A stretch of 64,000 nt of DNA, from contig NC_092374.1 of NCBI RefSeq assembly GCF_030028105.1, forward strand, positions 8,670,998 to 8,734,997, given 5' to 3'. Positions within the stretch are counted from its first letter, which is position 1, and each line of letters starts with the position of its first letter. The position numbers were made by a program, and so were the translations under genes. Positions 3,501 through 57,591 of the stretch are shown one piece after another. Source of the DNA: Mobula birostris (Eukaryota). The notes under the pieces were generated by a model. That model ran no database searches and was not told where the DNA came from. It saw only the letters and a list, made by a program, of their open reading frames with translations.

Positions 3501-3504
3501 AGAC

Positions 3505-3602: not shown

Positions 3603-3606
<4 letters not shown>

Positions 3607-29335: not shown

Positions 29336-29396
29336 ATGCTCTCTCTCCGGGTTTGTCTCTGCACGGTTCTCCTATCCGTCTCAGTCCGGGGACACA
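29336..29396 (+). CDS. Receptor exon 1: signal peptide MLSLRVCLCTVLLSVSVRGH, phase-1 donor
   Basis: GGCGATG Kozak context, hydrophobic core, donor A|GTAAGT; 61 nt = 20 codons + 1. Confidence 0.8.
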
Positions 29397-30828
29397 GTAA
29401 GTGTTTTCCATTGTCCTCATCATCTCCTTCCTCATCCGAATGCTCGGGTGTCCGCTGTGGCAGCTCTGCATCTGTTTGAGCGTTGGGTTAAACCGAGGAG
29501 TGAAGGGATGTTGGGAGACTGGTCCGCCTTATTGACACACTACATTCCCTCTGGTGGAAGTGATCTGGTGGTCGGGCAGTTGGAGAAACACACACGTGGA
29601 TCCCAGGGTTTGGTATCCCAGGGTGGAACCCTCGATAAACGTGGGTGGGGTGGGGGGGCGGGTGGCTATCGGCGGTGCGGGAGGATAGGGCACTGAGTTT
29701 AAACCAATCAGTCATCAATTTACTCAATGGCGGTGAGGTGTCGAGGTGCCGAGTGGCCTCCTGCTTCTAACCCACATTCCGGATGATCTCCTTATAGCAG
29801 CGGAAGTCGGATGGAGTCCTGGTTCCGGATGAGTATCAAAATTATGAAGAGTGTGCACTGAGGGAGGCTCTCCCATTGGTGGACGGGGATAGAAATGGCA
29901 TTATAGAATAAAAATGATTCGCCATAGAACTATAGAGTTGCCTGGGCACATTACTGCCACGTATTCAGAGTAAAACGTGGGGCCGGGGTAGGAAGTGGGT
30001 GTTGAAAAGGGGAGCGGGGAACTGTCTGAAATGGAATTCACGGGGCTGTGAGGAAGGGATGGGGGAATGGGACTGCGTGGGTTGTTCTTACATAGGGCCA
30101 GTATGAACAATGGGCTGAATGCCCTCGTACTCAACTGTAAACTTTCCGTCGCTCTGAGGAAATTCCAAGAATTCTCCTATCCGTAACCGGTGCTCCAGAA
30201 TCTCCAACCTCTTCCTCTCTGAAGCGGCAAGATTGTAAAAGCCTACAGGTCCGAGAAGCAGACAATGAATTCCTGAGACGACCCGATCTCATCCTGTAAC
30301 CCGTTCCCCGATATCCGTCATCTACATAAAACTACCACATCGCCCCCCCGCCCCCTTCCACATCAGAACCCAGACTGTAACCCACTCCCAGGTATCGGTT
30401 ATTATACATTTAACACCCACTCCCGATGCCTCCTACTCCCGGGTGTCAGTTATTACACATATAACTACCCCCGCCCACTCACAGACCAGACCCTCATCCT
30501 GCACCTGACACCAGGAATCCGTTATTATACATATAAATCCCAACCGGACGTTTCCCACGTCAGAACCCAGCCTGTGGCTCACTCCGCTGGGTCAATGTCC
30601 AAACCAGGTCCACCGATACGTTGCGATACGTCGTGGAGCTACAACACGGGATCTGGTTCCGTGGGGTTCTGAAACTCCGTGCCTGTTCGTGTTCTCTCCC
30701 TCCCTCTCGCTCTCGTTCTCGCTGTCTCTCTGTCTCTCTCTCTCTCTCACACGCTCTCTCTCTCTCTCTCTTTCTCACACACACACTCTCACGCGCACAC
30801 ATTCCCTCCGCGCTCTCACACACACAGC

Positions 30829-30870
<42 letters not shown>

Positions 30871-31025
30871 ACTTTCACCCACCCACCCACTGACGTCGCC
30901 CTGTTCGGCTCCGTGATCTGGTACAGGGTGGAATCAGGGGCTAAAAAGCTGGTGTTTAACTGCACATTTCCCAGTCCCAGCCGCTCCCGGTGCGATACAA
31001 CGACACACGTGATCAATAAGTGTTG
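30871..31025 (+). pseudogene. Siglec-15-like V-set pseudo-exon (acceptor/5' part and internal part deleted)
   Basis: TFTHPPTDVALFGSVIWYRVESGAKKLVFNCTFPSPSRSRCDTTT is paralogous to exon 40537-40920; fused directly to a (CT)n tract; ends TGTTG|GTGAGT. Confidence 0.9.
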
Positions 31026-31164
31026 GTGAGTCTCATGTTTGTGTGTCGTGCCGGGGTTTCTGCTCCGGATCCCTCTCCTGTGAATTATGTTGGACAGTGT
31101 GCTCGGGGGTCGGGATGAAGCATTGGCTGCGGTATATTTGATCGAGTTCTTGAATATAAAAATG

Positions 31165-31880
31165 ATAGATAGACAGATAGAGAGATAGACATGCTTTATT
31201 GATACCGAGGGAAATTGGGTTTCGTTACAGTTGCACCAACCAAGAATAGAGTATAAATATAGCAATATAAAACCTTAAATAATTAAATAATAATATGTAA
31301 GTTATGCCAGATGGAACTAAGTCCAGGACCAGCCTATTGGCTCAGGGTGTCTGACCCTCCAAGGGAGGAGTTGAAAAGTTTGATGGCCACAGGCAGGAAT
31401 GACTTCCTATGACGCTCCGTGCTGCATCTCGGTGGAATGAGTCTCTGGCTGAATGTACTCCTGTGCCCAGCCAGTACGTTATGTAGTGGATGGGAGACAT
31501 TGTCCAAGATAGCATGCAACCTGGACAGCATCCTCTTTTCAGACACCACCGTCAGAGAGTCCAGTTCCACCCCCACAACATCACTGGCCTTACGAATGAA
31601 TTTGTTGATTCTGTTGGTGTCTGCCACCCTCAGCCTGCTGCCCCAGCATACAACAGCAAACATGATAGCACTGGCCACCACAGACTCGTAGAACATCCTC
31701 AGCATCGTTCAACAGATGCTAAAGGACCTCAGTCTCCTCAGGGAATAGAGATGGCTCTGACCCTTCTTGTAGAGAGCCTCAGTGTTCTTTGATCAGTCCA
31801 GTTTATTGTCAATTCGTATCCCCAGGTATTTGTACTACTCCACCATGTCCACACCGACCCCCTGGATGGAAACAGTTGCA
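31165..31880 (-). mobile_element. Rex1/Babar LINE 3' end
   Basis: ORF 31334-31705 MFYESVVASAIMFAVVCWG...RHRKSFLPVAIKLFN; same 3' end recurs at 63797-64000. Confidence 0.85.
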
Positions 31881-31969
31881 GCTTTATAAAACTTTGGAGA
31901 GCCCACATTTTGGAGATTTATGTGCTGTTCTGGGTGGTACATTAAAGGAAGGATATGTAATCGTTGGAA

Positions 31970-33430
31970 AGGATTCAGAACCTCACATCTTATCCTCTTG
32001 CTCTTCACATACTTGTAGAATGCCTTGGGGTTTTCCTTAATCCTGTCCTCCAATGCCTTCTCATGGCCCCTTCTGCCTCTCCTAATTTCTATCTTAAGCT
32101 GCTTCCTGCAAGCCTTATAATCTTTCAATATTCATATCATTACCTAGTTTTTTGAACATTTCGTACGCTCTTCTTTTCTTCTTGACTAGATTTCCAACCA
32201 CCTTTGTGCACCACAGATCTTGTACGCTCCTGTCCTTTCCATGTCTCATTGGAATGTACCTACTCAGAACTCCATGCAAATATCGCCTGAACGTTTGCCA
32301 CATTTCTTCCGTACATTTCCCTGAGGACATCTGTTTCCAATTTATGCTTCCAAATTCCGCCTGTTAGCCTCATATTTCCCCTAACTCCAATTAAACGCTT
32401 TCCTAACTTGCCTGTTCCTATCCCTCTACAATGCTATGGTAAAAGAGATAGAATTGTGATCACTATTTCCAATATGTTCTCCCACTGGGAGATCGGACAC
32501 CTGTCCAGGTTCATTTCCCAATACCAGATCAAGTACTGCCTTTCTTCTTGTAGGCTATCTATATACTGTGTGAAGAAACGTTCCTGACCACACCTAACAA
32601 ACTCCACCCCACCTAAACCCCTCACTCAAGGAAGAACCAATCGATATTTGGAAAATTAAAATCTCCCACCATGACAACACTGTTATTATTACACATTTCC
32701 AGAATCTGTCTCGCTATCTGCTCCTTGATGTCCCTGTTACTATTGGGTGGTCTATAGAAAACACCCAGTAGAGTTATTGACCCCTTCCTGTTGCTAACTT
32801 CCACCCACAGAAACTGCGTAGAGAATCCCTTTATGACTTGCTCCTTTTCTGCAGCCGTGACACTATCGAACAGTACCACGTCTCCACCTCTTTTGCCTCC
32901 CTCCATGTCCTTTCTAAAACATCTAAAGCCTGGCACTCTAAATAACCATTCCTGCCCCTGAGCCTCGCAAGTCTCGGTAATGGCCACAACATAGCTCCAA
33001 GTACTGATCCACGCTCTAACTTCATCCACTTTGTTCATAATACTCCTTGCATTAAAATAGACACATCTCAAACCATCGGCCTGTGCGACTTGCTTCACAG
33101 TCACCTGCCCATCCTCGCTCTGACACTGTCTCAAGCTTTTTCTATTTATGACCCAACCGCCTCTTCCACTGTCTCTTCAGTTCGGTTCCCACCCCCCAAC
33201 AATTCTAGTTTAAACTCTCCCCAACAGCCTTTGCAAGTATAATGCTGTCCTTTTTGTATAGGTCCCGCCTGCCCCTAAAGAGGTCGCAATGACCCAGAAA
33301 TCTGAATCCTTGCCCCCTGCTCCAATCCCTTAGCCACGCATTTATCCTCCTCTTCACCTTATTCCTATACTCACTGTCAGGTGGCACAGGCAATAATCCC
33401 GAGATTACTACCTTTGTGGTCCTGCTTCTC
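31970..33430 (-). mobile_element. Decayed CR1 (ORF1 esterase end + APE)
   Basis: KVVISGLLPVP..INAWLRDW; LRCVYFNARSIMNKVDE, FYRPPNS, MVGDFNFPNIDW. Confidence 0.9.
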
Positions 33431-33759
33431 AATAATTTAATTTAGCTTTCTTATTTTTTATGTACTTACTGTAATTTATAGGTTTTATTATTATATTTGG
33501 CTTTGTACTACTGCTGCAAAGCAACAAATTCTATGACATACACACACCAGTGATGCAATCTCGTTGTTTATTCTATTGTTTTCTATATTAAATCTGATTT
33601 TGATTCTGATTCTGACGTGACCCCCATTCCGGACTTTACAGCATCACACCGCAGTGTGTAGCCCACTCCCGAGTACCCATCATTGCACATATAAACCTCC
33701 CATCCTGGACCCTCCAATGGATCACAGTCTGTACCCAGTCCTGGCTATCCACTACTGCT

Positions 33760-34140
33760 CATTTAGTTGTCAGGCCCTACTGGTGTATCTGGAGGATCTC
33801 TGAAAGCCTGTGTCAATCAACTGGTGGGGAAGATGAAGGATATCTTCAATCCCTCACGACTGCAGTTAGAGGTCCCCACCTGCTTCAAAAGGATAACAAT
33901 CATACTGGTGCCCAAGCAGAACAGGGTGAGCTGCCTTAATGACCCTCATCCAGGGGCACTCACATCTACTGCCATGAAATGCCGTGAGAGGTCGCTCTCG
34001 GTTGGAGTCCACTCCTGCCTCAGGAAGAACCTGGGTCCATGGCAATTTGCCTGTCACCACAACAGGTCTACAGTGAATGCAATCTCACCGGCTTCTCACG
34101 TGGCCTTGGCTCACCTGGACAACAGCAAAGCCTTTGCACT
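33760..34140 (+). mobile_element. Rex1/Babar RT fragment
   Basis: ORF 33767: GSLKACVNQL..DIFN..VPTCFKRITIILVPK..SCLND..ALTSTAMKC. Confidence 0.8.
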
Positions 34141-34200
34141 GATAATTTATTTGAATTATTTATATATATTTGCTGTAAATAATAGCTTTTATTTTTATAC

Positions 34201-35817
34201 AAACATAGAAACATAGAAAATAGGTGCAGGAGTAGGCCATTCAGCCCTTCGAGCCTGCACCGCCATTCAGTATGATCATGGCTGATTATCCAACTCAGAA
34301 CCCTGCACCAGCCCTTCCCTCCACACCCCCTGATCCCCGTAGCCACAAGGGCCATATCTAACTCCCTCTTAAATATAGCCAATGAACTGGCCTCAACTGT
34401 TTCCTGTGGCAGAGAATTCCACAGATTCACCACTCTCTGTGTGAAGAAGTTTTTCCTAATCTCGGTCCTAAAAGGCTTCCCCTCTATCCTCAAACTGTGA
34501 CCTCTCGTTCTGGACTTCCCCAACATCAGGAACAATCTTCCTGCTTCTAGCCTGTCCAATCCCTTTAGGATTTTATACGTTTCAATCTGATCCCCCCTCA
34601 ATCTTCTAAATTCCAACGAGTATAAGCCTAGTTCATCCAGTCTTTCATCATATGAAAGTCCTGCCATCTGAGGAATCAATCTGGTGAACCTTCTTTGTAC
34701 TCCCTCTATGGCAAGGATGTCTTTCCTCAGATTAGGGGACCAAAACTGCACACAGTACTCTAGGTGTGGTCTCACCAAGGCCTTGTACAACTGCAGTAGT
34801 ACCTCCCTGCTCCTGTACTCGAATCCTCTCGCTATAAATGCCAGCATAGCATTCGCCTTTTTCACCGCCTGCTGTACCTGCATGCCCACTTTCAATGGAC
34901 TGGTGTATAATAACACCCAGGTCTCATTGCACCTCCCCTTTTCCTAATCGGCCACGATTCAGGTACTAATCTGTTTTCCTGTTTTTGCCACCAAAGTGGA
35001 TAACCTCACATTTATCCATATTAAATTGCATCTGCCATGAATTTGCCCACTCACCTAACCTATCCAAGTCACCCTGCTTCCTTTTAGCATCCCCTCACAG
35101 CTAACATTGCCGCCCAGCTTCGTGTCATCCGCAAACTTGGAGATGCTGCATTTAATTCCCTCATCCAAGTTATTAATATATATTGTAAACAACTGGGGTC
35201 CCAGCACTGAGCCTTGCGGTACCCCACTAGGCACTGTCTGCCATTCTGAAAAGGTCCTGTCTATTCCCACTCTTTGCTTCCTGTCTGCCAACCAATTCCC
35301 TATCCACATCAATACCTTACCCCCAACACCGTGTGCTTTAAGTTTGCACACCAATCTCCTGTGTGGGACCTTGTCAAAAGCCTTTTGAACATCCAAATAT
35401 ACCACATCCACTGGTTCTCCCCTATCCACTGTACTAGTTACATTCTCAAAAAATTCTATGAGATTCATCATGAGATTCATCAGACATGATTTTCCTTTCA
35501 CAAATCCATGCTGACTTTGTCCGATGATTTCACCGCTTTCCAAATGTGCTGGTGTCACACCTTTGATAACTGACTCTAGCAGTTTCCCCACCACCGATGT
35601 TAGGCTAACCGGTCTATAATTCCCTGGTTTCTCTCTCCCTCCTTTTTTAAAAAGTGGGGTTACATTAGCCACCCTCCAATCCTCAGGAACTAGTCCAGAA
35701 TCTAAAGAGTTTTGAAAAATTATCACTAATGCATCCATTATTTCTTGGGCTACTTCCTTAAGCACACTGGGATGCAGACCATCTGGCCCTGGGGATTTAT
35801 CTGCCTTTAATCCCTTT
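34201..35817 (-). mobile_element. 5'-truncated CR1
   Basis: ORFs 35055-35837 and 34068-34916; TTTCTATG tail. Confidence 0.95.
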
Positions 35818-35864
35818 GCAGTACACAGCTGTGGCAAAACAACAAATTAAACTGCAGATGCCGG

Positions 35865-38800
35865 TGACCTCAGACTTGACTCAAAACTCCTCAATGCATC
35901 AATCATTTCAGTCTCCTGACTCAGCCTTCCTCAATCCATCAATCACGGATTCCTGTCTCACTCCTCCTCAATCCATCTATCACCTCAGACTTCTGTCTCA
36001 TCCCTCCTCAATCTATCAATCACCTCAGGATCCTGTCCCATCCCTCCTCTATCACCACAGACTCCTCTCTCACCGCTCCTCAGTCCATCGATCACCTTCA
36101 ACCCCTGTATCAACCCTCCTCAATGCATCAATAAACTCCAGGCACCTCTCTCACCCCTTCTCAATCCATCAATCAGTTCAGACACATATCACATCCCTCC
36201 TCAATCCTTCAGGAACCTCAGACTGCTGCCTCACCCCTCTTTATTCTTCCAATCACTTCAGACTTCTGTCTCACCCCATCTCAATCCATCAATCAGCTCA
36301 GACCACTTCCTCACCCCTCCTCAAACCACTAATCATTGAGAACCTTGCCTCAACACTTCTCAATCCATCAATTACCTGAGAGTCCTGTCTCACCTATCCT
36401 CAACACATCAATCACCCCAGACACCTCTCTCAATCCTCCTCAATCCATCAGGCACCTCAGACTGCTGCCTCACTGACTCAATATTCCTATCACGTTAGAC
36501 TCTGTCACTCTCCTCTTCAATTCATCAATCATTTCAGAATGCTGTCTCTCCCCATCTCAAATTATCAATCACTTCAGAACACAGCACCACCCATCCTGAA
36601 TCCACAAATCATTAGGAATCCTCCCTCAACCCTCCTCAGTCCATCAATCACTTCAGACTACTGTCTCGCCCTTCTTCAATTCATCAATCACCTTAGAATA
36701 CTGTCTCACCGCTCTTCAATCCATCAATCACCTCCGGCTCGTGTCTCCCCACTTCTCAATCTATCAAACGCCTCATATTCTTTTCTCACCCATCCTTCAT
36801 CCTTCAATCACCTCAGACTCCTGTCTCACACCTCCATAATAAATTAATCACAGACTTCTGTCTGACCACACCCCTCAATTCATCAATCAGCTCATTCAAT
36901 TTGGACCTCACTTCATTCCATTGATCACCTCAGACAGGTTCTATGCCTCCTATATCCAGCAATAACCTCAGACAGCTTTCTCACACCACTTCATTCCATC
37001 AAAAACGTCATCGTCCTGCCTCACCTGAACTCAATCCATCAATGACCTCACACTCTTGTCTGACCCCTCTTAAATCCAACAATCAACTCAGATTCCTCTC
37101 TCACCCATCCTCAATCCATCAATCAGCTCACACTCCTGTCGCACCCCTCCCAAATCCAGAAAACAATTCAAACGCCTCTCCCACCCCTCCTCAATCCAAT
37201 ATGCTCAGAATCCTTTCTCATTGCTCCTCAATCCATCAATCACCACAGAATTCTGTCTCACCACTCTTCAGTCCATCAATCACTTTAATCTCCAGTCTCA
37301 ACTCTCACAAATCCATCAATCACCTCAGACATCCGTCTCACCCTCCTCAATCTGTCAATTACTCGAGACTCCTTTCTCATCCCTTGGTAATCTATCAATT
37401 AGCCGAGTCTGATGTCTCATCTTTCCTCAATTCATCAATCACCTTAGACTCCTGTCTCTTCTCATACTCAATCCTTCAATCACCTGAAATTCATGTCTCA
37501 CTCCTCCTCAAACCATCAGTCACCTCAGTCCCCTGTCTCACCCCTCCTCAACCTATCAATCACCTCAGACACATTTAGCACTCCACCTCAAACCATCAAT
37601 CACGTGAGAATCCTGTCTCACCCCTCCTTAATAGATCAGTTTCCTCAGACACAAATCTCACCCTCCTAAAGCCATCAATCATCTCAGACTCGTCTCTCGA
37701 TTATGGATTAATTGAGGTAATCCATCAATTACCTTAGACACCTGTCTCACCCATCTACAACCTATCAATCACCTCAGACACCGGTCTCACCCCTCCTCAA
37801 TCCATCAATCTCCTGAGTCCCCTGTCTCAACCCTCCTCAATCGATCAATCACCTCATACTCCTGTCTCACCCCTCCTCAAACTATCAATTTCCTCAGACC
37901 CTTGTCCAACCCTCTTCAATCCATCAATCACCTCATACTTCTGTCTGACCAGTCATCAATGGATGGATCACATCGGACTCGTCTCACAAATCTTCATTCT
38001 TCAAAAACTTCTGAATCCTGTTTCACCCCTCCAGAACTCATTAATTGCTTCAGACACATTTCTCACCACTCCTCAAACCATCAATCAACTCAGACTTTCA
38101 TCTCAGCTCTTTTCAATCCATCAATCACCTCAGACTCCTGTCTCACACCTCAATACATCGAATTACCTCATAATTCTGTCTGACCATTCCTCAATACATG
38201 AATCACATCAAACTCGTCTCACAAATCTTCAATCCATCAAAAACTTCAGAAACCTGTCTCACACCTCCTCAATCCATCAATCACCTTTGACTCCTCTTTC
38301 ACCCCTCCTCAGTCTTCCAATCACCACAGATGCCTCTCATAGCTTCTCATCCATCAATCACCCAAGTCTCACTCATCATCAATCCGCCAATCATCTCAGA
38401 CTCCTGTCTCAACCTTTCTCAATCCATCAATCAACCGAGACAACAGTAAAATCCCTCCTCAATCCATCAACAAAATCAGACTCCTTTCTCACCCCTCCTC
38501 AATACATCAAACACCTCACACTCTGTCTGACCATTCCTCAGTACAGGAATCATATCAGACTTGTCTCACAAATCTACAATCCATAAAAAAACTTTAGAAT
38601 ATGTCTCTCCCCTCCTCAATCTATCAGTCACCTCAGACTCTTCTCACACTCCTCCTCAATCGATCAATTACTTCAGACTCCTGTCTCACTCCTCCACAAT
38701 CGCTCATTGCGTCACACTCCTGTCTCACCTCTCTCAATCCTTCAGTCATCACAGATGCTTCTCGCAGCTTCTCATTCCGTCAATCACCCGAGTCTCACTC

Positions 38801-39840
38801 ATCGTCAATCCACCAATCATCTCAGACTCCTGTCTCAACCTTTCTCTATCCATCAATCAACCGAGACGATTGTCTTAGCACTCCTCTATCCATCAGTCAC
38901 CTCAGACACATCTCACTCCTTTTCTAACCATCAATCACCTCATACTCCTGTGTCACCATTCTCAATGCATCAATAACTTCAGACTTCCCTGCTCCTCAGT
39001 ACACCAATCACCTCAGACTCCTAACTCACCCCTCCTCAGTCTACCAATGACTTCAAATCCTGTCTCACCCCTCCATAATCCATCAATCAACTGAGACTCC
39101 AGTCAGACCCCTCCTCAATCCATCAATCACCTCATACTCGTCTCACTCCTCCTCAATCCTTCAATCATCTCAGACTCATGTCGCATCCTCAATTCATCAC
39201 TGAATACTCTTGCCTCAGCCCTCTTCAGCTATCAATCACTAAAGATTCTTGATTCACCCCTCCTCAATCCATCAATCACCTCAGACCCGTCTCACTCCTC
39301 CTCAACCCATCAATCACTTCAATCTCCTGTCACGTATCTCCTCAATCCTTCAGCCACCTGAGATCACTGCCTCACCTCTCCGCTATCAATCAATCACCTC
39401 AGACTCCTGTCTTACCTCTCCTCAATCCAAAAGTCACTTCAGACTGCTCTCTCACTCCTCAGCAATCCATCAATAAACTCAGACTCCTTTATCATCCCTC
39501 CCCAATCCTTCAGTCACCTCAGTCCCCTGTCTCCCCTCTCCTCAATCCATTTATCACCTCAGAAACCAGTCTCACTCTTCCTCAATCCATAAATCATCTC
39601 AGACTCCTGACTCTCCCCTCCTCAATCCATCTACCTCTTCACACTACTGTCTCAACCCTCCTCAATCCATCAATCACTGACTCATTTTTCCACTCCTCCT
39701 CAATTCATCAATCATATCAGTCCTGTCTTATCCCTCCTCAATCTACCATCACCACAGACTCCTGACTCTCCCCTGCTCAATCCATCAATCACATCAGACT
39801 CCAATCTCATGGCTGCTCAATTTGCCAATCCCCTCAGACT
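35865..39840 (+). repeat. 40-bp degenerate tandem satellite (about 4 kb)
   Basis: Consensus ATCAATCACCTCAGACTCCTGTCTCACCCCTCCTCAATCC. Confidence 0.95.
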
Positions 39841-40101
39841 GCGCTTTCCTTTTCCTCTGACTATTCAACAGTCCTCTATCAGTCCTGATGCAAGCCCAAA
39901 ACTTCAGTGTTCTTTTACCCCCACAGATGCAGATTGTTTGTTGTTCAAATATCGACCACTGCTTATCCTCTCTCTCTCTCTCTCGCTCTCTCCCCGCCCC
40001 TCCCCCTGTCTGCCCCCTCCCCTCCCCCTCCCCCTCCTTCCCCCCTCCCCCTCCCCTCTTCTTCCGCTCCTCCTCCCCCTCTGCATTCCCCTCGCCCTCT
40101 C

Positions 40102-40377
40102 NNNNNNNNNNNNNNNNNNNNNNNNNNNNNNNNNNNNNNNNNNNNNNNNNNNNNNNNNNNNNNNNNNNNNNNNNNNNNNNNNNNNNNNNNNNNNNNNNNN
40201 NNNNNNNNNNNNNNNNNNNNNNNNNNNNNNNNNNNNNNNNNNNNNNNNNNNNNNNNNNNNNNNNNNNNNNNNNNNNNNNNNNNNNNNNNNNNNNNNNNNN
40301 NNNNNNNNNNNNNNNNNNNNNNNNNNNNNNNNNNNNNNNNNNNNNNNNNNNNNNNNNNNNNNNNNNNNNNNNNNNNN
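40102..40377. other. Assembly gap (276 N) inside a C/T-rich low-complexity tract
   Basis: Direct reading. Confidence 1.
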
Positions 40378-40536
40378 TCTCTCCTCTCTCTCCCCCTCCC
40401 CGCCTCCCCCATCCCTCTCTCCCCCTCTCTCTGCCTCTCTCTCTCTCTCCCTCTCTCCTCCTCTCTCGCACTCACTCAATCAATCCCTGCCTCACTCACT
40501 CCCAGTATCTCTCTCTCTCTCTCTCTCTCTCTGCAG

Positions 40537-40920
40537 ACTATTCACTCAATGGTTGGTCAATGTCCGGCGCTGATGTGGTCTCAGCGGTGGAAGGAGCCTC
40601 CGCTGTGTTACCGTGGACTTTCACCCACCCACCCACTGACCTCGTCCCTTCCGGCACCGTGATCTGGTACAAGACAGAACAAGGTGCCAGAAAACCGGTA
40701 TTTAACTGCACCTATCCCAGTTCTGGCCGCTCCTGGTGCGATACAACAACACTGAAGACTGGAGGAGGGCGGTTCGGATTCGTGGGGAACCTCAGTCAGA
40801 GAGATGCCTCGATAATGGTGCAGCGTCTGAACCGGAGTGACGGTGGTCGGTATCAGTGCCGGGTGGAGCTCAATATTGATAAATTTGAAACGGCGGTTCT
40901 AACAGATCTGTCTGTGAGAG
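40537..40920 (+). CDS. Receptor exon: Siglec-15-like V-set Ig domain (V1), phase 1-1
   Basis: (CT)nGCAG acceptor, AG|GTGAGG donor, 384 nt open; VLPWTFTHP..VIW..VFNC..WCDT..GRF..VGN..DASIMVQRL..DGGRYQCRVEL parallels Siglec-15, including the F-strand Arg. Confidence 0.92.
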
Positions 40921-41449
40921 GTGAGGACGATGTTCAAACATTGAGCTGTAAAAGTACACTAATCATTTCACATTTTATTTCCCTGAAAACATATTTTATT
41001 CATAATCTACAAGTACATTTTGCAGGATAATCATGTCAAATTACACGTGATTGTCATGTGCACATCACATAGAACACTACGGCACCGTACAGGCCTTTCA
41101 GCCCACAATGTTGTGCTAGCTCTTAAACCTGCTCCAAGATCAATCTAACCCTTGCCTCCCACGAACCCCTCCATTTCTACAACAACCGTGTACCTGTCTG
41201 AAAGTCTCCCCCTCCCCTCCCCCTCTCCCCTCCCCTCCTCCCCTCCTCCCCTCCCCCTTCTCCCCCTCCTCCCCTCCTCCTCCTCTTCCCCCTCCCACAT
41301 ACCCCTCCATTTCTATAACATCTGCGTACCTGTCTGAGAGACTCCCCCTCTCCCTCTCTCCCCTCCCCCTCCCACATACCCCTCCATTTCTACAACATCC
41401 GTGTACCTGTCTCAGAGTCTCTCTCTCTCTGTCTTGCTCTTTCTCTCTC

Positions 41450-42895: not shown

Positions 42896-43075
42896 CTCCC
42901 AAGAGAGAGTCTCCAGCTTGCTCAACCTTTCCTCATTAAACATGCTCTCTGGTCCAGGCAGCATCCTGGCAGATCTCCTCTACATCTTCTCTAAAGCTTC
43001 CTCGTCCTTCGTATAATGAGGTGAGCGGAACTGAACTTATTGCTGCTGCAGGAACAATTTTCATTGCACGTCTGC

Positions 43076-46000
43076 GCAGGCGCGTGACGTAGCACACCAA
43101 GGTTTAAAAAGCAACCACCATATACAGCGGCCATCGTTGTAGTGGCCATCGTCGGACTGGATTGAGTCAGAGTGGGACGGCTTTGGCTCAAACAGGCTTC
43201 GGCGAGAACAGGCAGAGGCCAGGGTAGGTTCCGGTAAGTTTTTTATTCAGATTGTCTAGCATAGAGAGAATGCCAGGCAGGATGCTGGAATGCTCCTCTT
43301 GCAGGATGTGGGAAGTCAGGGAGCCCTCCGGTGTCCCTGACAACGACACCTGCAAGAAGTGCATCCAGCTGCAGCTCCTGACAAACCGCGTTAGGGAACT
43401 GGAGCAGGAGCTGGATGACCTGCAAATCATTCGGGAGAATGAGGAGATTATAGATAGTAGCTACAGGGAGGTAGTTACACCAAAGGAGCAGAGGCCAGGA
43501 AATTGGGTCACTGTCAGGCAAGGGAAGAGGAAAGGGCAGGCAGAGCAGGGTTCCCCTGTGGCCATTCCCCTCAACAACAAGTATATCGCATTGGATACTG
43601 TTGGGGGGGATGACTTATTTGGGACAAGCTGCAGTAGCCGGATCTCTGACACTGAGTCTGGCTCTGCAGTGCAGAAGGGAGGGGGGAAAGAGGACAGCGG
43701 TAGTGATAGGGGACTCGATAGTTAGAGGTGCAGATAGGAGGTTCTGTGGTCGTGACAGAGAATCCAGGATGGTTTGTTGCCTCCCGGGTACCAGGGTCAA
43801 GGATGTCTCTGATCAATTGCATGACATTCTGAAGTGGGAGAGTGATCAGCCAGATGTCGTGGTGCACATCGGTACCAATCACATAGCAAGGAAGAGTGAG
43901 GAGGTCCTGGAGAGTGAGTATAGAGAGGAAGTTGAAAAGCAGGACCTCGAGGGTGGTAATCTCAGGATTGCTACCTGTGCTACATGCCAGTGAGGGTAGG
44001 AATAGGATGCTCTGGAGGATGAACAAGTGGCTGAGGAACTGGTGTAGGGAGCAGGGTTTCAGATTTCATGATAATTGGGACCTATTCTGGGGCAGGTGGG
44101 ACCTCTCTTGTACAGTTACACTTGAACTACAGGGGAACCAATATCCTTTCAGGGAGGTTTGTTAATGCAGTTGGGGAGGCTTTAAACTAGATTTGCAGGG
44201 GGATGGGAACCAGAGTGCCAGAGCTGACAGAGTGGCTGGGGTGAAAATAAATGATGTTAAAATTTCAAGCAAATCCGCTAATACAAAGGTTGTGAGTGGT
44301 GGTAAAAATCTTCTGAGGTGTATATATTTCAATGCTAGGAGTATTGTGGGGAAGGCGGATGAGCTGAGGGCATGGATTGACACATGGAATTATGACGTTA
44401 TAGCAATTAGTGAAGCTTGGCTACAGAAGGGGCAGGACTGGCAGCTTAATATTTCAGGGTTCCGATGTTTCGGATGCGATCGAGGCAGAGGAATGAAAGG
44501 TGGGGGAGTAGCATTGCTTGTTAGGGAAAATATTACAGCAGTGCTCAGGCAAGACAGATTAGAGGGCTTGTCTACTGAGTCCTTATGGGTGGAGTTGAGA
44601 AACAGGAAAGGTATGGCTACATTATTGGGATTGTATTACAGACCACCCAATAGTCAACGAGAATTGGAAGAGCAAATCTGCAGAGAGATAGCAGGCAACT
44701 ACAGGAAACATAAAGTTGTGGTGGTAGGGGATTTTAATTTTCCATATATTGATTGGGTCTCCCATACTGTTAGGGGTCTAGATGGTTTAGAGTTTGTAAA
44801 ATGTGTTCAGAAAAGTTTTCTAAATCAATATATAGAGGGACCAACTAGAGGGGATGCAATATTGGATCTCCTGTTAGGAAACGAATTAGGACAAGTGACA
44901 GAAGTCTGTGTAGGGGAGCACTTTGGTTCCAGTGATCATAACACCATTAGTTTCAACTTGATCATGGACAAGGATAGATCTGGTCCTAGGGTTGAGGTTC
45001 TTAACTGGAAGAACGCCAAATTTGAAGAAATGAGAAAGGATCTAAAAAGCGTGGATTGGGACAGGTTGTTCTCTGGCAAGGATGTGATCGGTAGGTGGGA
45101 AGCCTTCAAAGGAGAAATTTTGAGAGTGCAGAATTTGTATGTTCCCATCAGGATTAAAGGCAAAGCGAATAGGAATAAGGAACCTTGGTTCTCAAGGGAT
45201 ATTGCAACACTGATAAAGAAGAAGAGGGAGTTGTATAACATGTATAGGAAGCAGGGAGTAAATAAGGTGCTTGAGGAGTATAAGAAGTGCAAGAAAATCC
45301 TTAAGAAAGAAATCAGGAGGGCTAAAAGAAAACATGAGGTTGCCTTGGCAGTCAAAGTGAAGGATAATCCAAAGAGCTTTTACAGGTATATTAAGAGCAA
45401 AAGGATTGTAAGGGATAAAATTGGTCCTCTTGAAGATCAGAGTGGTCGGCTATGTGCGGAACCAAAGGAAATGGGGAGATCTTAAATACATTTTTTGCGT
45501 CTGTATTTACTAGGGAAACTGGCATGAAGTCTATGGAATTAAGGGAAACAAGTAGTGAGATCATGGAAACTGTACAGATTGAAAAGGAGGAGGTGCTTAC
45601 TGTCTTGAGGAAAATTAAAGTGGATAAATCCCCGGGACCTGACAGGGTGTTCCCTCGGACCTTGAAGGAGATTAGTGTTGAAATTGCAGGGGCCCTGGCA
45701 GAAATATTTAAAATGTCGCTGTCTACAGGTGAGGTGCCGGAGGATTGGAGAGTGGCTCATGTTGTTCTGTTGTTTAAAAAAGGATCGAAAAATAATCCGA
45801 GAAATTATAAGCCAGTAAATTTAACGTCGGTAGTAGGTAAGTTATTGGAGGGAGTACTAAGAGACAGAATCTACAAGCATTAGGATAGACAGGGACTTGT
45901 TAGGGAGAGTCAACATGGCTTTGTGCATGGTAGGTCATGTTTGACCAATCTATTTGGAGTTTTTCGAGGAGGTTACCAGGAAAGTGGATGAAGGGAAGGC

Positions 46001-47192
46001 AGTGGATATTGTCTACATGGACTTCAGTAAGGCCTTTGACAAGGTCCCACATGGGAGGTTAGTTAGGAAAATTCAGTCACTAGGTATACATGGAGAGGTG
46101 GTAAATTGGATTAGACATTGGCTCAATGGAAGAAGCCAAAGAGTGGTAGTAGAGAATTGCTTCTCCGAGTGGAGGCCTGTGAACAGTGGTATGCCACAGG
46201 GATCAGTGCTGAGTCCATTGTTATTTGTCATCTATATCAATGATCTGGATGATAATGTGGTAAATTGGATCAGCAAATTTGCTGATGATACAAAGATTGG
46301 AGGTGTAGTAGACAGTGAGGAAGGTTTTCAGAGCCTGCAGAGGGACTTGGACCAGCTGGAAAAAATGGGCTGAAAACTGGCAGATGCAGTTTAATACAGA
46401 CAAGTGTGAGGTATTGCATGTTGGAAGGACAAACCAATGTAGAACACACAGGGTTAATGGTAAGGCACTGAGGAGTGCAGTGGAACAGAGGGATCTGGGA
46501 ATACAGATACAAAATTCCCTTAAAGTGGCATCACAGATAGATAGGGTTGTAAAGAGAGTTTTTGGTACATTGGCCTTTATTAATCAAAGTATTGAGTACA
46601 AGAGCTGGAATGTTATGATGAGGTTGTATAAGGCATTGGTGAGGCCGAATCTGTGTATTGTGTTCAGTTTTGGTCACCAAATTACAGGAAGGATATAAAT
46701 AAGGTTGAAAGAGTGCAGAGAAGGTTTACGAGGATGTTGCCGGGACTTGAGAAACTCAGTTATAGAGAAAGGTTGAATAGGTTAGGACTTTATTCCCTGG
46801 AGCGTAGAAGAATGAGGGGAGATTTGATAGAGGTATATAAATTTATGATGGGTATAGATAGAGTGAATGCAAGCAGGCTTTTTCCACTGAGGCAAGGGGA
46901 GAAAAAAACCAGAGGACATGGGTTAAGGTGAGGGGGGAAAAGTTCAAAGGGAACATTAGGGGGGGCTTCTTCACACAGAGAGTGGTGGGAGTATGGAATG
47001 AGCTGCCAGACGAGGTGGTAAATGCGGGTTCTTTTTTAACATTTAAGAATAAATTGGGCAGATACATGGATGGGAGGTGTATGGAGGGATATGGTCCGTG
47101 TGCAGGTCAGTGGGACTAGGCAGAAAATGGTTCGGCACAGCCAAGAAGGGTCAAAAGGCCTGTTTCTGTGCTGTAGTTTCTATGGTTTCTAT
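43076..47192 (+). mobile_element. Near full-length CR1: 5' UTR, ORF1 (CxxC...CxxC finger, coiled coil, SGNH esterase), ORF2 (APE + RT), disrupted
   Basis: CSSC..CKKC, LQLLTNRVRELEQELDDL, VIGDSIVRG..VVVHIGTN; ORF2 44193-46931 with stops and shifts; empty site in the inverted arm. Confidence 0.97.
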
Positions 47193-47339
47193 GTGTCTGC
47201 ACAGGTGCAGTGAAACTCTAGTTGCAGCAGCAACACAGGCACAGAGCGTTGCATCAGAAAATCAGCAATCAGGTTCAAGTTTATTGTCACCTGACTGTAC
47301 ACATATACAGAGCCAAACGAAACCACCTTCTTCCGGATC

Positions 47340-47750
47340 AGGGTGTTGGACACTTTCTATAGTGAACATCACGTCGCAGAGTGTTCACTGTAGAATTCCT
47401 TCTCAGACGCTCCAGCTCCGGCTGTTGAACACTTTCAGTACAGTCAGTATTACACTGGAGAGGGTTCACTGTAGAATTCCCTGTCAAACACACCAGCTCA
47501 GGCTGTTGAACACTTTCAGTACAGTCCGTATTACACTGGTTAGACGGTTCACTGTAGAATTCCCTGTCAAACACACCAGCTCAGGCTGTTGAACACTTTC
47601 AGTACAGTCAGTATTACACTGGAGAGGGTTCACTGCAGAATTCCCTGTCAAACACACCAGCTCAGGCTGTTGAACACTTTCAGTACAGTCAGTATTTACA
47701 CTGGAGAGGGTTCACTGTAGAATTCCCTGTCAAACACACCAGCTCAGGTT
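47340..47750. repeat. 81-82 bp minisatellite, about 5 copies
   Basis: Reverse complement of the unit at 2355-2610. Confidence 0.95.
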
Positions 47751-47803
47751 GTTCAGCAGTTCCTGTATAGTAAGATTTTACAATGGAGAGGGTGCAGAGG
47801 AGG

Positions 47804-47834: not shown

Positions 47835-47841
47835 AATCCAA

Positions 47842-49328: not shown

Positions 49329-49718
49329 CTCCCGGCGAGAGTGTCTCTGTGATGACTGGAACCGAGGGAGCTTCGGCCACGTTACCCTGTGAGTTCACAC
49401 GGCCTCCGCAGAACCTCACCGCACACACGGTGACGTGGATGAGGAAGGATCCCTACCGACACATCGTCACATTCAGGCGTTATGAAAATGGATTGTGGGC
49501 AGCGGAAAACGGAGTGACTCGGTACGAGCTCGTCGGGGACCCAGAGCGGGGAAACGTCTCGATCAGGATAAAGCAGCTGAGTGTGGAGGACAGTCACAGC
49601 TACCGGTGTCTGGCTGCGTTCAGGAAAATGAACCATGATTATTCATTCGACAGAGACCACGTCAAACCCCCATTTATCCATGTGTTCCAGAGTGAGATCC
49701 AGCTGCAGGTCAGACCAG
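49329..49718 (+). CDS. Receptor exon: second V-set Ig domain (V2), phase 1-1
   Basis: TCCTTCCCTCAG acceptor, AG|GTAAGA donor, 390 nt open; ATLPCEF, VTW, RYELVGD, VSIRI, EDSHSYRC. Confidence 0.93.
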
Positions 49719-50072
49719 GTAAGAAACCATTGACACATTCTGCAGGGTATGGGGAGGGTGCAAGAGGGAGGAAGGGAGCAGGAATGGGAAGACGCATCTC
49801 ACGACGTTGAAGCGGCTGCAGCCTCGCCGCTGAGGGGTCAGCTTTAGGTGCAGTTGCCCGGGGGCGGTGGGGGTGTAGGAATCTCGGCTGTCACACCACA
49901 CGGAGGGTGGGGTGTGTGGGAAGCGGGCAGGTGAATGGGGTAGACGGTGTAGAGAAAGATTCAATGGAATACAGAGAAGGTGAGAGAATCGGCTGGAAAA
50001 TGGCAGAACAGAAATACATTACCCTTTGTTTTATTTAATAATAGAGTAAAGATCCCTCACTAGAGTTATGAA

Positions 50073-51695: not shown

Positions 51696-51795
51696 GGACA
51701 GAAGCTTCTGCCGAGCTGATGTTATGCATCCCACTCGGATTGAAAACTGTCGCCCTCTTAGTGATGGGCGCCGTTCTCTACGGTGACAAACTCAG
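51696..51795 (+). CDS. Receptor exon: transmembrane segment with Lys, phase 1-2
   Basis: CCCTTTCACTTCAG acceptor, AG|GTACTG donor; GTEASAELMLCIPLGLKTVALLVMGAVLYGDKL; LGLK resembles the LGFK of the Siglec-15 TM. Confidence 0.85.
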
Positions 51796-52234: not shown

Positions 52235-52365
52235 TCAGAAAGTACGTACGCTCTTCCCATATGCACGTCGGTTTCCTCCGGGTGCTCTGGCTTCCTCCCA
52301 CAGTCCAAAAAATTCCGGTTATCAGATTAATTGTTCATTGTAAACTGTCCTGTGATTAGACTAGC
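52235..52365 (+). mobile_element. V-SINE fragment
   Basis: GGTTTCCTCCGGGTGCTCTGGCTTCCTCCCACAGTCCAAA V-domain core. Confidence 0.75.
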
Positions 52366-52369
52366 ATTA

Positions 52370-55300
52370 GTCTAGGTTCCGCTAAGTTTTTTGTTCAGAT
52401 TATTTAGAGTAGAGAGAATGCCAGGCAGGATGTTGGAAAGCTCCTCGTGCAGGATGTGGGAAGTCAGGGAGCCCCCTGGTGTCCCTGACAATGACACCTG
52501 CAAGAAGTGCATCCAGCTGCAGCTCCTGACAAACCGCGTTAGGGAACTGGAGCAGGAGCTGGATGACCTGCGGATCATTCGGGAGAATGAGGAGATTATA
52601 GATAGTAGCTACCGGGAGATAGTTACGCCAAAGGAGCAGAGGATGGGAAATTGGGTCACTGTCAGGCGAGGGAAGAGGAAAGGGCAGGCAGAGCAGGGTT
52701 ACCCTGTGGCCATTCCCCTCAACAACAAGTATACCACATTGGATACTGTTGGGGAGGATGACTTACCTGGGACAAGCTGCAGTAGCCGGATCTCTGGCAC
52801 TGAGTCTGGCTCTGCAGTGCAGAAGGGAAGGGGATAAAGAGGAGAGCGGTAGTGATAGGGGACTCGATAGTTAGAGGTGCAGAAAGGAGGTTCTGTGGTC
52901 GTGACAGAGAATCCAGGATGGTTTGTTGCCTCCCGGGTACCAGGGTCAAGGATGTCTCTGATCGATTGCATGACATTCTGAAGTGGGAGGGTGATCAGCC
53001 AGATGTCGTGGTGCACATCGGTACCAATGACATAGCAAGGAAGAGTGAGGAGGTCCTGGACAGTGAGTATAGAGAGCTTGGTAGGAAGTTGAAAAGCACG
53101 ACCTCGAGGGTGGTAATCTCAGGATTGCTACCTGTGCTACGTGCCAGTGAGGGTAGGAATAGGATGCTCTGGAGGATGAACAAGTGGCTGAGGAACTGGT
53201 GTAGGGGGCAGGGTTTCAGATTTCAGGATAATTGGGACCTCTTCTGGGGGAGGTGGGACCTGTACAAGAGAGACGGGTTACAATTGAACTACAGGGGGAC
53301 CAATATCCTTTCAGGGAGGTTGGTTAGCGCTATTGGGGAGCCTTTAAACTAGATTTGCAGGGGGATGGGAACCAGAGTGCCAGAGCTGACAGTGTGGCTG
53401 GGGTGAAAATAAATGATGTTAAGAGTTCAAGCAAATCCGCTAATAGAAAGGTTGTGAGTGGTGGTAAAAATCTTCTGAGGTGTATATATTTCAATGCTAG
53501 GAGTATTGCGGGGAAGGCGGATGAGTTGAGGGCACGGATTGACACGTGGAATTATAACGTTTTGGCTACAGGAGGGGCAGGACTGGCAGCTTAATATTCC
53601 AGGGTTCCGATGTTTCAGATGTGATCGAGGCAGAGGAATGAAAGGTGGGGGAGTAGCATTGCTTGTTAGGGAAAATATTACAGCAGTGCTCAGGCAGGAC
53701 AGATTAGAGGGCTTGTCTACTGAGTCCTTATGGGTGGAGCTGAGAAACAGGAAAGGTATGGCCACATTAGTGGGATTGTATTACAGACCACCCAATAGTC
53801 AACGAGAATTGGAAGAGCAAATCTGCAGAGAGATAACAGGCAACTGCAGGAAACATAAAGTTGTGGTGGTAGGGGATTTTAATTTTCCATATATTGATTG
53901 GGACTCCCATACTGTTAGGGGTCTAGATGGTTTAGAGTTTGTAAAATGTGTTCAGGAAAGTTTTCTAAATGAATATATAGAGGGACCAACTGGAGGGGAT
54001 GCAATATTGGATCTCCTGTTAGGAAATGAGTTAGGACAAGTGACAGAAGTCTGTGTAGGGGAGCACTTTGGTTCCAGTTATCATAACACCATTAGTTTCA
54101 ACTTGATCATGGACAAGGATAGATCTGGTCCTAAGGTTGAGGTTCTGAACTGCAAGAAGGCCAAATTTGAAGAAATGAGAAAGGATCTAAAAAGCGTAGA
54201 TTGGGACAGGTTGTTCTCTGGCAAGGATGTGATCGGTAGGTGGGAAGCCTTCAAAGGAGAAATTTTGAGATTGCAGAATTTGTATGTTCCTGTCAAGATT
54301 AAAGGCAAAGTGAATAGGAATAAGGAACCTTGGTTCTCAAGGGATATTGCAACACTGATAAAGAAGAAGAGGGAGTTGTATGACATGTATAAGAAGCAGG
54401 GAGTAAATAAGGTGCTTGAGGAGTATAAGAAGTGCAAGAAAATACTTAAGAAAGAAATCAGGAGGGCTAAAAGAAGACATGAGGTTGCCTTGGCAGTCAA
54501 AGTGAAGGATAATCCAAAGAGCTTTTACAGGTATATTAAGAGCAAAAGGATTGTAAGGGATAAAATTGGTCCTCTTGAAGATCAGAGTGGTCGGCTATGT
54601 GCGGAACCAAAGGAAATGGGGGAGATCTTAAATAGGTTTTTTGCATCTGTATTTACTAAGGAAACTGGCGTGAAGTCTATGGAATTAAGGGAAACAAGTA
54701 GTGAGATCATGGAAACTGTACAGATCGAAAAGGAGGAGGTGCTTGCTGTCTTGAGGAAAATTAAAGTGGATAAATCCCCGGGACCTGATAGGGTGTTCCC
54801 TTGGACCTTGAAGGAGACTAGTGTTGGAATTGCAGGGGCCCTGGAAGAAATATTTAAAATGTCGCTGTCTACAGGTGAGGTGCCGGAGGATTGGAGAGTG
54901 GCTCATGTTGTTCCGTTGTTTAAAAAAGGATCGAAAACTAATCTGGGAAATTATAGGCCAGTAAGTTTAGCGTCGGTTGTAGGTAAGTTATTGGAGGGAG
55001 TACTAAGAGATAGAATCTACAAGCATTTGGATAGACAGGGACTTATTAGGCAGAGTCAACATGGCTTTTTGCGTAGTAGGTCATGTTTGACCAATCTATT
55101 GGAGTTTTTCGAGGAGGTTACCAGGAAAGTGGATGAAGGGAAGGCAGTGGATATTGTCTACATGGACTTCAGTAAGGCCTTTAACAAGGTCCCGCATGGG
55201 AGCTTAGTTAGGAAAATTCAGTTGCTAGGTATACATGGAGAGGTGGTAAATTGGATTAGACATTGGCTCAATGGAAGAAGCCAAAGAGTGGTGGTAGAGA

Positions 55301-56340
55301 ATTGCTTCACCGAGTGACCTGTGACTAGTGGTGTGCCACAGGGATCAGTGTTGGGTCCATTGTTATTTGTCATTTATATCAATGATCTGGATGATAATGT
55401 GGTAAATTGGATCAGCAAATTTGCTGATGATACAAAGATTGGAGGTGTAGTAGACAGTGAGGAAGGTTTTCAGAGCCTGCAGCGGGACTTGGACCAGCTG
55501 GAAAAATGGGCTGAAAAGGCAGATGGAGTTTAATACAGACAAGTGTGAGGTATTGCACTTTGGAAGGACAAACCAAGGTCGAACATACAGGGTTAATGGT
55601 AAGGCACTGAGGAGTGCAGTGGAACAGAGGGATCTGGAAATACAGATAGAAAATTCCCTAAAAGTGGTGTCACAGGTAGATAGGGTCGTAAAGCGAGCTT
55701 TTGGTACATTGGCGTTTATTAATCAAAGTATGGAGTATAAGAGCTGGAATGTTATGATGAGGTTGTATAAGGCATTGGTGAGGCCGAATCTGGAGTATTG
55801 TGTTCAGCTTTGGTCACCAAATTACAGGAAGGATATAAGTAAGGTTGAAAGAGTGCAGAGAAGGTTTACAAGGATGTTGCCGGGACTTGAGAAACTCGGT
55901 TACAGAGAAAGGTTGAATAGGTTAGGACTTTATTCCCTGGAGCGTAGAAGAATGAGGGGAGATTTGATAGAGGTATATAAAATTATGATGGGTATAGATA
56001 GAGTGAATGCAAGCAGGCTTTTTCCACTGAGGCAAGGGGAGAAAAAAACCAGAGGACATGGGTTAAGGGTGAGGGGGGAAAAGTTTAAAGGGAACATTAG
56101 GGGGGGCTTCTTCACACAGAGAGTGGTGGGAGTATGGAATGAGATGCTAGACGAGATGGAAAATGCGGGTTCTTTTTTAACATTTAAGAATAAATTGGAC
56201 AGATACGTGGATGGGAGGTGCATGGAGGGATACGGTCCGTGTGCAGGTCGGTGGGACTAGGCAGAAAATGGTTCGGCACAGCCAAGAAGGGCTAAAAGGC
56301 CTGTTTCTGTGCTGTACTTTCTATGGTTTCTATGGTTTCT
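52370..56340 (+). mobile_element. Near full-length CR1, same family as 43076-47192
   Basis: ORF1 52391-53352 with a break near 52835; ORF2 53355-56260 with a 592-aa open segment; (TTTCTATGG)n tail. Confidence 0.97.
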
Positions 56341-57575
56341 ACATCCCTGAGTTGCTGGGTGTCACGACTGGGTGGGGTGCTGTATCTGTAAATAACAAAA
56401 TGATAAGTAATAGATTGTGCTTAGAGAAGACTGACAGGGTGGCATAACATCGAGGGCCGAAGGGTCTGTACTGTGCTGTAATGGTCTGTGTTCCAAATAC
56501 GAATCTAATTTTGATGTGCACAAAAGGACAGGCTGGAACCCAGAAGAAACAACAATACGGGAAAGTCTCGACTCTCCCCATCCCACGTGCACTGGGATCA
56601 GGTACTGCAATCAACCCAGGATGAATATGGTCTCTTGGTCTACAGAAAACTAGTCCATGAGGCGAAATCTCTCGGAGATTTAGCTCTTGACTGAATCTCT
56701 GCAGCCATCTCCCTTAAGAATAATTCAATTTAAATTTTAGCTTATCAACTTCAAACATATTAACACTGAAAAATAATTCAAATGATTTCCATGCCTCTTA
56801 TATCATTGATAATCAGGTTCCTCCTTAAATTACAGCCCGGATCTGTTACTGTCCCCAATATGTTGCATTTACTTAGCTCCTATGAGTTTTGTATCCACTT
56901 CCCTCTCTTCCGGATTCATCCTAAGAAATCTGATAATCAAATGCCTGTGTCCTAGAAATTGATTCACAGCCAGGATTAACTTCACTCTGCCATACATAGA
57001 AGGATTTTCCTCTAGAACGCATATTCCGAGGAATTTCCTGAGCCAGAAGGTAGTGAATCTGTGGAATGTATTGCCACAAATGGCTGTGGGAATCCTGAAA
57101 ACATAGATTGATGGGTTCTTGATGAGTAAGGGCGTCAAAGTTGACGGCGTAAGTACAGGAGAATGGGGTTTGGTAGGGATAATAAATCAACCACGATGGA
57201 ATGCAGAGCAGAATAGAAGGGCTGAATTCAGAAAGTCTGATGATACTTTATATGCTCTTATGGTCTTAATCTAAGTACCATACTATTTTATCAATATTAT
57301 CCTACAGCCTAAGACCATCTTCTTATCAACAACGCGACCTATATTGTTATGTCACTGTAAAGTTTCCAATTGAATAACTGAATAAAAGTTTGGGCTCATC
57401 TCCAGTTTTGTTGTCAAACACTGATACCGACGATAAAATTTATCCTGTGGGAAATCCCATCATGTCTCGATCCAAATCCCTTCAAAAATTATAAGTGAAT
57501 TGGGGAGAGGGAGTCGGATGTACTGTCATTGTACAACGATCAAGGTTCATGTTAACTGTTTTGTTCTGTCCACAG

Positions 57576-57591
57576 AGAGCGACGAGACTGA
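57576..57591 (+). CDS. Receptor terminal coding exon: short cytoplasmic tail (R)ERRD*
   Basis: GTTAAC branch-like site, TTTTGTTCTGTCCACAG acceptor; phase 2 continuation of the TM exon gives KLRERRD-TGA. Confidence 0.6.

Follow-up and report, generated by a model that had tools for sequence, protein, structure and literature searches.

The 64-kb window of the Mobula birostris genome analysed here (the whole stretch of DNA, 45.6% G+C, interrupted by a single run of N letters) appears to contain an intact five-exon gene for a type I membrane receptor of the activating type, a member of a shark and ray family that would have derived from Siglec-15, and we put the probability of this reading at roughly 0.7. 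Rebuilding the gene model from the sequence joins five exons with AG/GT splice sites and matching phases (Table 1), separated by introns of 11140, 8408, 1977 and 5780 nt, into an open reading frame (ORF) of 951 nt and 316 amino acids (aa) with zero internal stops. This reproduces the frame proposed in a first-pass annotation of the same DNA, and the five-exon gene stands as a confirmed observation. The encoded protein, comprising a signal peptide, two V-set immunoglobulin (Ig) domains (V1 and V2), a transmembrane helix and a short tail, is identical to RefSeq XP_072113196.1 ("uncharacterized protein [Mobula birostris]"), residue for residue over the full length, and the NCBI gene range in GCA_030028105.1 (record CM057560.1) covers 28,256 nt that correspond exactly to positions 29336-57591. 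The gene had been described as hidden, which is true of the ORF track only, since RefSeq holds the identical 316-aa model. There are no other genes in the window. A tblastn search with 18 family proteins matched the five exons, a V1 fragment in intron 1 and two retrotransposon segments traced to a Narcine RefSeq model, and across the window it found no C2 remnant, no immunoreceptor tyrosine-based inhibitory motif (ITIM) and no further cytoplasmic exon, in agreement with the proposed model, which had none. The sequence comparisons described below support the core of the earlier interpretation, that of a chondrichthyan V-V Siglec-15-like receptor of the activating type.

The first Ig domain is recognized as a V-set by Pfam (6.8e-10), and a phmmer search against PDB places it nearest to human Siglec-15 (7zoz, E 7.5e-15), followed by JAML (2.3e-5) and sialoadhesin (3.2e-5), with bit scores of 58 for Siglec-15 versus 23 for CD33; CD300, pIgR and TREM-type proteins are not among the top PDB matches. 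Fold comparison yields the same neighbor, the AlphaFold model of V1 (predicted local distance difference test, pLDDT, 79.6) having 7zoz_A as its top Foldseek match (E 1.1e-10, TM 0.82/0.86, root-mean-square deviation 2.3 Å, 38% identity), and then sialoadhesin. The proposal that V1 is closest to Siglec-15 thus holds by sequence and by fold. In the structure of Siglec-15, C64 and C142 form an inter-sheet disulfide, R143 lies on strand F and a C95-C104 bridge is specific to this Siglec, with sialic-acid contacts contributed by W44, Y87, R153, Y154, and E155 (PMC10264397). In an alignment of 11 V-domain sequences spanning ray, shark, mammal, bird, lungfish, paddlefish and teleost (alignment A2), the manta residues Trp27, Cys128 and Arg129, equivalent to W44, C142 and R143, are invariant across ray, shark and bony-vertebrate Siglec-15 V domains, and Cys78 and Cys88, which align with the C95-C104 pair, are invariant or nearly so across the family. 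The manta segment DKFET aligns with DRYES, retaining the E155 equivalent, with a conservative change of Y154 to Phe and a change of R153 to Lys. The F-strand Arg and the additional Cys pair singled out in the first-pass annotation therefore align with R143 and C95-C104, and the CGG codon that follows the F-strand Cys lies where it had been placed.

The second Ig domain had been taken for a V rather than a C2 domain, and this is borne out by a V-set assignment in Pfam (1.7e-14), next to the absence of any C2 remnant from the window; judged from these comparisons, V2 occupies the place of the Siglec-15 C2 domain. V2 carries both canonical Cys residues and no Siglec Arg, reads YRCLAAF, as opposed to YLCLAEF in the C2-less V-V family, and is about equally close to CD276 (3.8e-8), the Siglec-15 V domain (4e-8) and pIgR D1 (2.8e-7) in PDB; the V-domain tree puts the V2 type, with weak support, among the V domains of Siglec-15 type. 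The membrane helix contains Lys295 (AAA, 51743-51745, as originally located) within LGLK, and a Lys-anchored alignment identifies LGxK as a signature common to mammal, bird and lungfish Siglec-15. The entire cytoplasmic tail, GDKLRERRD, amounts to 9 residues without tyrosine, so that the membrane Lys and the very short tail are both as described. In Siglec-15, the membrane Lys mediates association with DAP10/DAP12, and R143 is needed for sialic-acid binding (PMC7226832). Structure prediction for the full-length protein (pLDDT 80.9) gives two Ig domains and a helix that spans residues 282-315, a fold matched best by proteins with two V domains, JAML among them.

An exhaustive homology search with V1 returned 53 cluster representatives at E <= 1e-10, among which proteins of the same build, with two V domains, a membrane Lys and a short tail, occur in Mobula hypostoma, Hemitrygon akajei, Hypanus sabinus, Rhinoraja longicauda, Narcine bancroftii, Heterodontus francisci, and Scyliorhinus torazame. 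Several of these are named Siglec-15 by NCBI, and the tails of the M. hypostoma, Hemitrygon and Hypanus proteins read LRKRRD or LRKRQD. In a second group, V-V or single-V ectodomains are followed by a membrane helix that lacks a charge and by a long tail with a VIYAEV-type ITIM at its end; the third, made up of V-V-C2 proteins, is represented in Rhincodon, Heptranchias and also M. birostris. Profile cutting indicates that a V1-type and V2-type pair is common to the C2-bearing and C2-less shark and ray genes, whereas bony-vertebrate Siglec-15 has the V1 type only. The V-domain tree unites the C2-less V1 domains in one clade (99/98) and the C2-less V2 domains in another (99/99), with the manta gene nesting among M. 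hypostoma copies. Furthermore, the V1 domains of ITIM-tailed and Lys-bearing proteins of one species adjoin in the tree, which corresponds to a paired-receptor pattern. The many ray and shark paralogues of the same build and their ITIM-tailed relatives bear out the suggestion that the gene belongs to a diversifying chondrichthyan family. The searchable literature contains no description of a shark or ray Siglec-15 family, nor of DAP12 in elasmobranchs; the gene model and its relatives are already public, under automatic names only.

If the manta gene encodes an activating receptor of this family, Lys295 would pair with the membrane aspartate of an adaptor carrying an immunoreceptor tyrosine-based activation motif or a YxxM motif (DAP12, DAP10 or an FcR-gamma-like chain), and a ligand bound by V1/V2 on a myeloid or natural killer-like cell would trigger Syk-type activation. 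The ITIM-tailed relatives with near-identical V1 would then give the opposing signal, the two kinds of protein making up a paired-receptor family.

The gap-free locus of M. hypostoma (L002) provides an orthologue with the same structure. Its product (P0158) has 315 aa, encoded by exons of 61, 381, 390, 100 and 16 nt separated by introns of 8703, 2435, 3348 and 1814 nt, with the leader exon at L002 10001-10061 and the tail exon at L002 27233-27248. Introns and flanks are collinear between the two Mobula species at 92-93% identity, and the differences in intron length are mainly due to two retrotransposon copies absent from M. hypostoma. The reading frame and all eight splice sites are intact in both species. 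As a separate observation, the V2 domains of P0158 and a further M. hypostoma protein, P0159, group to the exclusion of the manta gene (99/86), and the manta V1 is closer in the V-domain tree to P0159 than to the collinear orthologue P0158, a pattern suggestive of gene conversion, or else of a recent duplication, in M. hypostoma.

Several observations weigh against the reading of a conserved, Siglec-15-derived activating receptor. The matching RefSeq entry is a computed model (XP_ record), and the introns are long and full of retrotransposons; since the homologous gene spans 49-56 kb in Hemitrygon, in Heterodontus and at a second M. hypostoma gene, long repeat-filled introns are nevertheless normal for the family. 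The ratio of nonsynonymous to synonymous substitution rates (dN/dS) relative to the orthologue is 0.95 overall, much of the protein evolving at a near-neutral rate (V1 0.93; V2 2.2, with 2 silent changes only; transmembrane segment and tail 0.55). The V-domain tree, firm as it is on the C2-less V1 clade, leaves unsettled whether V1 is sister to bony-vertebrate Siglec-15 as against a CD33-like outgroup (support 87-89, open fork), and does not resolve the order of V1, bony-vertebrate Siglec-15, the V2 type and the CD33-like pair. With this deep order unsettled, the assignment to Siglec-15 rests on the direct sequence and fold scores. Within V1, lastly, the Y87 equivalent is Gly, and the canonical B-strand Cys (human C64) is replaced by Trp47, a change missing from the first-pass annotation. 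Cys128, the equivalent of C142, is kept, and with Trp47 in place of its partner the inter-sheet core disulfide cannot form.

The loss of the B-strand Cys is not peculiar to this gene. Trp47 is common to three Mobula proteins, the third besides the orthologue being the paralogue P0162, and in alignment A1 the same position holds Tyr in Hypanus P0170 and Phe in Narcine P0006 and P0008, most family members keeping Cys. All the replacements are aromatic, each of them one base change away from a Cys codon, and P0162 also carries Tyr at the equivalent Cys of V2 (residue 169). The finding of Trp, Tyr and Phe in different family members implies repeated loss of the Cys, always in favour of an aromatic residue, and the members with Tyr or Phe have otherwise intact frames.

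These features of V1 bear directly on its ligand, and the loss of the C64-equivalent Cys weakens the claim of a glycan receptor. The likeliest alternative retains the same gene and adaptor signalling and holds that V1 binds a protein or pathogen-derived ligand and no longer sialic acid, as happens when the activating members of a paired-receptor family diverge from recognition of the self ligand; we regard it as possible, at odds well below even. Besides the missing core Cys and the Gly at the Y87 position, such a shift would fit the distribution of replacements relative to M. hypostoma, which gather, in V1 and V2 alike, in the C'-C'' and F-G regions (30 replacements versus 6 silent changes; V1 15:5, V2 15:1), the ligand face in Siglec-15, and it would also fit the loss of the Arg itself in some paralogues, which carry Q, K, S or H instead. 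The excess of replacements in these variable halves is not statistically significant against the one orthologue, however, and provides no evidence of positive selection. Moreover, the manta V1 keeps the R143, W44 and E155 equivalents, its change at Y154 is conservative, and the Siglec-15-specific Cys pair is retained. With the Arg pocket largely kept and both the core Cys and the Y87 equivalent gone, a sialoglycan is a possible but not a secure ligand of V1.

A second alternative, which we consider unlikely, is that of a decaying or non-functional copy whose frame is still open and which is no longer under selection as a receptor. It draws on the near-neutral dN/dS and the missing core Cys, and on a coding divergence (67/948 nt) no lower than that of the introns, orthologous non-coding DNA showing 5.9% substitutions and 0.47% indel events per site. 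It also draws on a locus that includes a truncated V1 copy, an inverted paralogous arm lacking V1 and two young retrotransposon insertions in introns. The same rates, however, predict about 4.4 indels in 948 nt of coding sequence, where a single in-frame codon indel is observed, and the chance that 67 random substitutions make no stop is 0.086, against a frame and splice sites that are intact in two species. Replacements are clustered, leaving residues 27-61 (the A-B-C strands of V1) and 145-202 (the end of V1 and the A-B-C strands of V2) free of them, and the two longest replacement-free runs (58 and 36 codons) have a probability of 0.0003 under even placement. At strongly conserved family sites, only 4 of 99 positions deviate (C47W, A225V, L241R, and E245A), mid-range among 31 members, and the first of these, Trp, recurs in the orthologue and P0162, with Tyr or Phe in other members whose frames are intact. 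The deficit of indels and stops, the clustering of replacements and the conserved sites together argue for a maintained gene, in which selection, by these measures, keeps the frame open.

The exons could lastly be a mosaic, in which the leader belongs to a V1-like fragment 1.5 kb downstream and V1, V2 and the transmembrane exon form a separate gene with its own leader in the assembly gap, a reading suggested by the position of the fragment, where a first V exon would be expected, and by that of the gap, just upstream of V1, and made very improbable by several findings: the gap-free M. hypostoma locus shows the order leader, fragment, V1, V2, transmembrane exon and tail; no second leader-like exon occurs near V1 in the window or in that locus, and no leader-like or V-like sequence lies between the fragment and V1 in M. 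hypostoma; the fragment, which ends in a stop, offers no open frame from acceptor to donor; and homologues from five species begin with the same leader, near-identical in paralogues and orthologues, joined to V1 at residue 21-22. Both flanks of the gap map to L002 in the same order and strand at 88% identity (39700-40082 to 17023-17404, and 40383-40920 to 18625-19145), with only low-complexity repeat between them, continuity being judged here by comparing coordinates with the orthologue. The gap lies inside intron 1 and leaves the reading frame unaffected. The shared exon order and the collinear flanks uphold the earlier assignment of all five exons to one locus.

Table 1. Exons, diagnostic codons and intronic features of the manta receptor gene (positions within the 64-kb window).
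Feature	Position	Strand	Details
Exon 1, start codon and signal peptide	29336-29396	+	61 nt, 20 codons + 1 nt, phase 1, donor GTAAGT
Exon 2, V1 Siglec-15-type V-set	40537-40920	+	384 nt, AG/GT, phase 1-1
Exon 3, V2 second V-set	49329-49718	+	390 nt, AG/GT, phase 1-1
Exon 4, stalk and transmembrane helix	51696-51795	+	100 nt, AG/GT, phase 1-2; Lys295 in LGLK
Exon 5, last five codons and stop TGA	57576-57591	+	16 nt, acceptor AG
Trp47 (TGG) at canonical B-strand Cys (human C64)	40614-40616	+	from alignments
Arg129 (CGG), aligned with human Siglec-15 R143	40860-40862	+	from alignment
Truncated V1-like pseudo-exon, V1 residues about 48-92	30871-31006	+	intron 1, 1.5 kb after leader
Minisatellite, 40-nt period	35887-39809	.	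intron 1, about 100 degenerate copies, ~3.9 kb
Assembly gap (N)	40102-40377	.	intron 1, low-complexity repeat, 160 nt upstream of V1 acceptor
Non-LTR retrotransposon, endonuclease and reverse transcriptase	43225-47193	+	intron 2, absent from M. hypostoma orthologue
Second retrotransposon copy	52373-56334	+	intron 4, 94.5% identical to first; orthologue with empty site

The pseudo-exon in intron 1 has its 5' part replaced by a CT/GA microsatellite. It is 81.6% identical in nucleotides to 40617-40752 and, at the amino acid level, closer to V1 of paralogue P0162 (88.9%) than to the V1 of its own gene (68%). M. hypostoma has a copy in the corresponding position (L002 11521-11652), implying that the pseudo-exon predates the split of the two species. 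The minisatellite is also present in the M. hypostoma orthologue, and an inverted copy of it lies at 3578-6733. This copy is part of an inverted paralogous arm (2323-8118, minus strand) that matches pieces of introns 1, including the minisatellite, and 2 within 29653-47800 at 73-94% identity; the arm has 41 nt where the plus arm has 1.4 kb including V1, and no leader-like exon was detected in it. Intron 2 also contains an 81-nt tandem repeat (47378-47793, about 5 copies, 91% identity) with an inverted counterpart at 2323-2770. The non-LTR (long terminal repeat) retrotransposon has a third copy at 18208-20228, the three being 94-95% mutually identical, and the two intragenic copies, one of which faces a precise empty site in the orthologue, probably inserted after the split of M. 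birostris and M. hypostoma. Residues 479-551 of Narcine bancroftii P0005 match the retrotransposon ORF (window 43264-43482 and 52412-52630), and the retrotransposon-like C-terminus of that protein is probably an annotation artefact. At the 3' end of the gene, the first AATAAA occurs 2.7 kb past the stop and is uninformative as a poly(A) signal. Read-through of the V2 donor would give a short open extension (49719-49810) followed by a stop, and NCBI annotates such a product in M. hypostoma (P0157, 301 aa, without membrane anchor), which hints at a possible soluble V-V isoform.

The closest likeness of the manta receptor outside cartilaginous fishes is with Siglec-15 of bony vertebrates (human Q6ZMC9, PDB 7zoz), the best match of V1 by sequence and fold, with which it shares the R143, W44 and E155 equivalents, the C95-C104-type pair, the LGxK Lys, and the lack of an ITIM. 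It differs from Siglec-15 in having a V-set instead of a C2 second domain, Trp and Gly at the C64 and Y87 positions, a G-G' loop 3 residues shorter and a tail of 9 rather than about 40 or more residues, and in forming part of a multigene cluster rather than a single conserved gene. Within sharks and rays, the C2-less V-V subfamily, known from automatic annotation only, shares with it the leader, V1 (53-85% identity), V2, the LGxK helix, a DK(L/S)RK..D tail and a structure of five exons with phases 1, 1-1, 1-1, 1-2, and 2, and the manta copy departs from it in Trp47, where most members keep Cys, and in its V2 motif. The V-V-C2 genes (Rhincodon typus "Siglec-15 isoform X2" P0072, Heptranchias perlo P0028, and M. 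birostris P0014) have the same succession of V1-type and V2-type domains, and Rhincodon P0072 resembles the manta receptor further in its membrane Lys and short tail. These genes differ, however, in placing a C2 domain between V2 and the membrane, many of them have long tyrosine-rich tails, and their V1 and V2 domains fall in clades apart from those of the C2-less genes. The likeness to JAML (PDB 3mj6 and 3mj9), the best fold match of the two-domain model, is one of architecture only, with two tandem V-set domains on one anchor, 17-18% identity, and neither the Siglec Arg context nor a membrane Lys in JAML.

Mammalian paired receptors offer a functional parallel. In the paired CD33-related Siglecs (Siglec-5/14 and Siglec-11/16) and in PILR alpha/beta, activating members combine a charged membrane residue with a short tail, ITIM members have near-identical ligand-binding domains, and evolution is rapid. 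The manta family differs in its origin, which would be independent and from the Siglec-15 lineage, and the gene described here has no C2 domain and no tyrosine motif in its tail.

To our knowledge, Siglec-15 has been treated in tetrapods and teleosts as a conserved, single activating Siglec of V-C2 build. In sharks and rays, the Siglec-15 lineage instead appears as a multigene cluster, in which V-V or V-V-C2 ectodomains are combined with membrane Lys residues or ITIM tails, and the manta gene, with an orthologue of the same structure, represents a clean and fully resolved example. The gain is limited in that the gene model and its relatives were already in RefSeq, and in that ligand, adaptor and expression are only predicted. 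At a broader level, we tentatively propose that sharks and rays may have built their own fast-evolving paired receptors from the Siglec-15 lineage, by adding a second V domain and later dropping C2, as a functional counterpart of the mammalian CD33-related Siglecs. In a subgroup including the manta gene, aromatic residues would repeatedly have taken the place of the B-strand Cys (Trp in Mobula, Tyr in Hypanus and Phe in Narcine), with the Arg pocket and an open frame preserved, giving rise to a disulfide-less lectin domain under selection. For comparative immunology, the family offers a tangible example of paired receptors evolving from another Siglec ancestor, and the manta V1 a natural test of how an Ig lectin domain fares when the core disulfide is gone.

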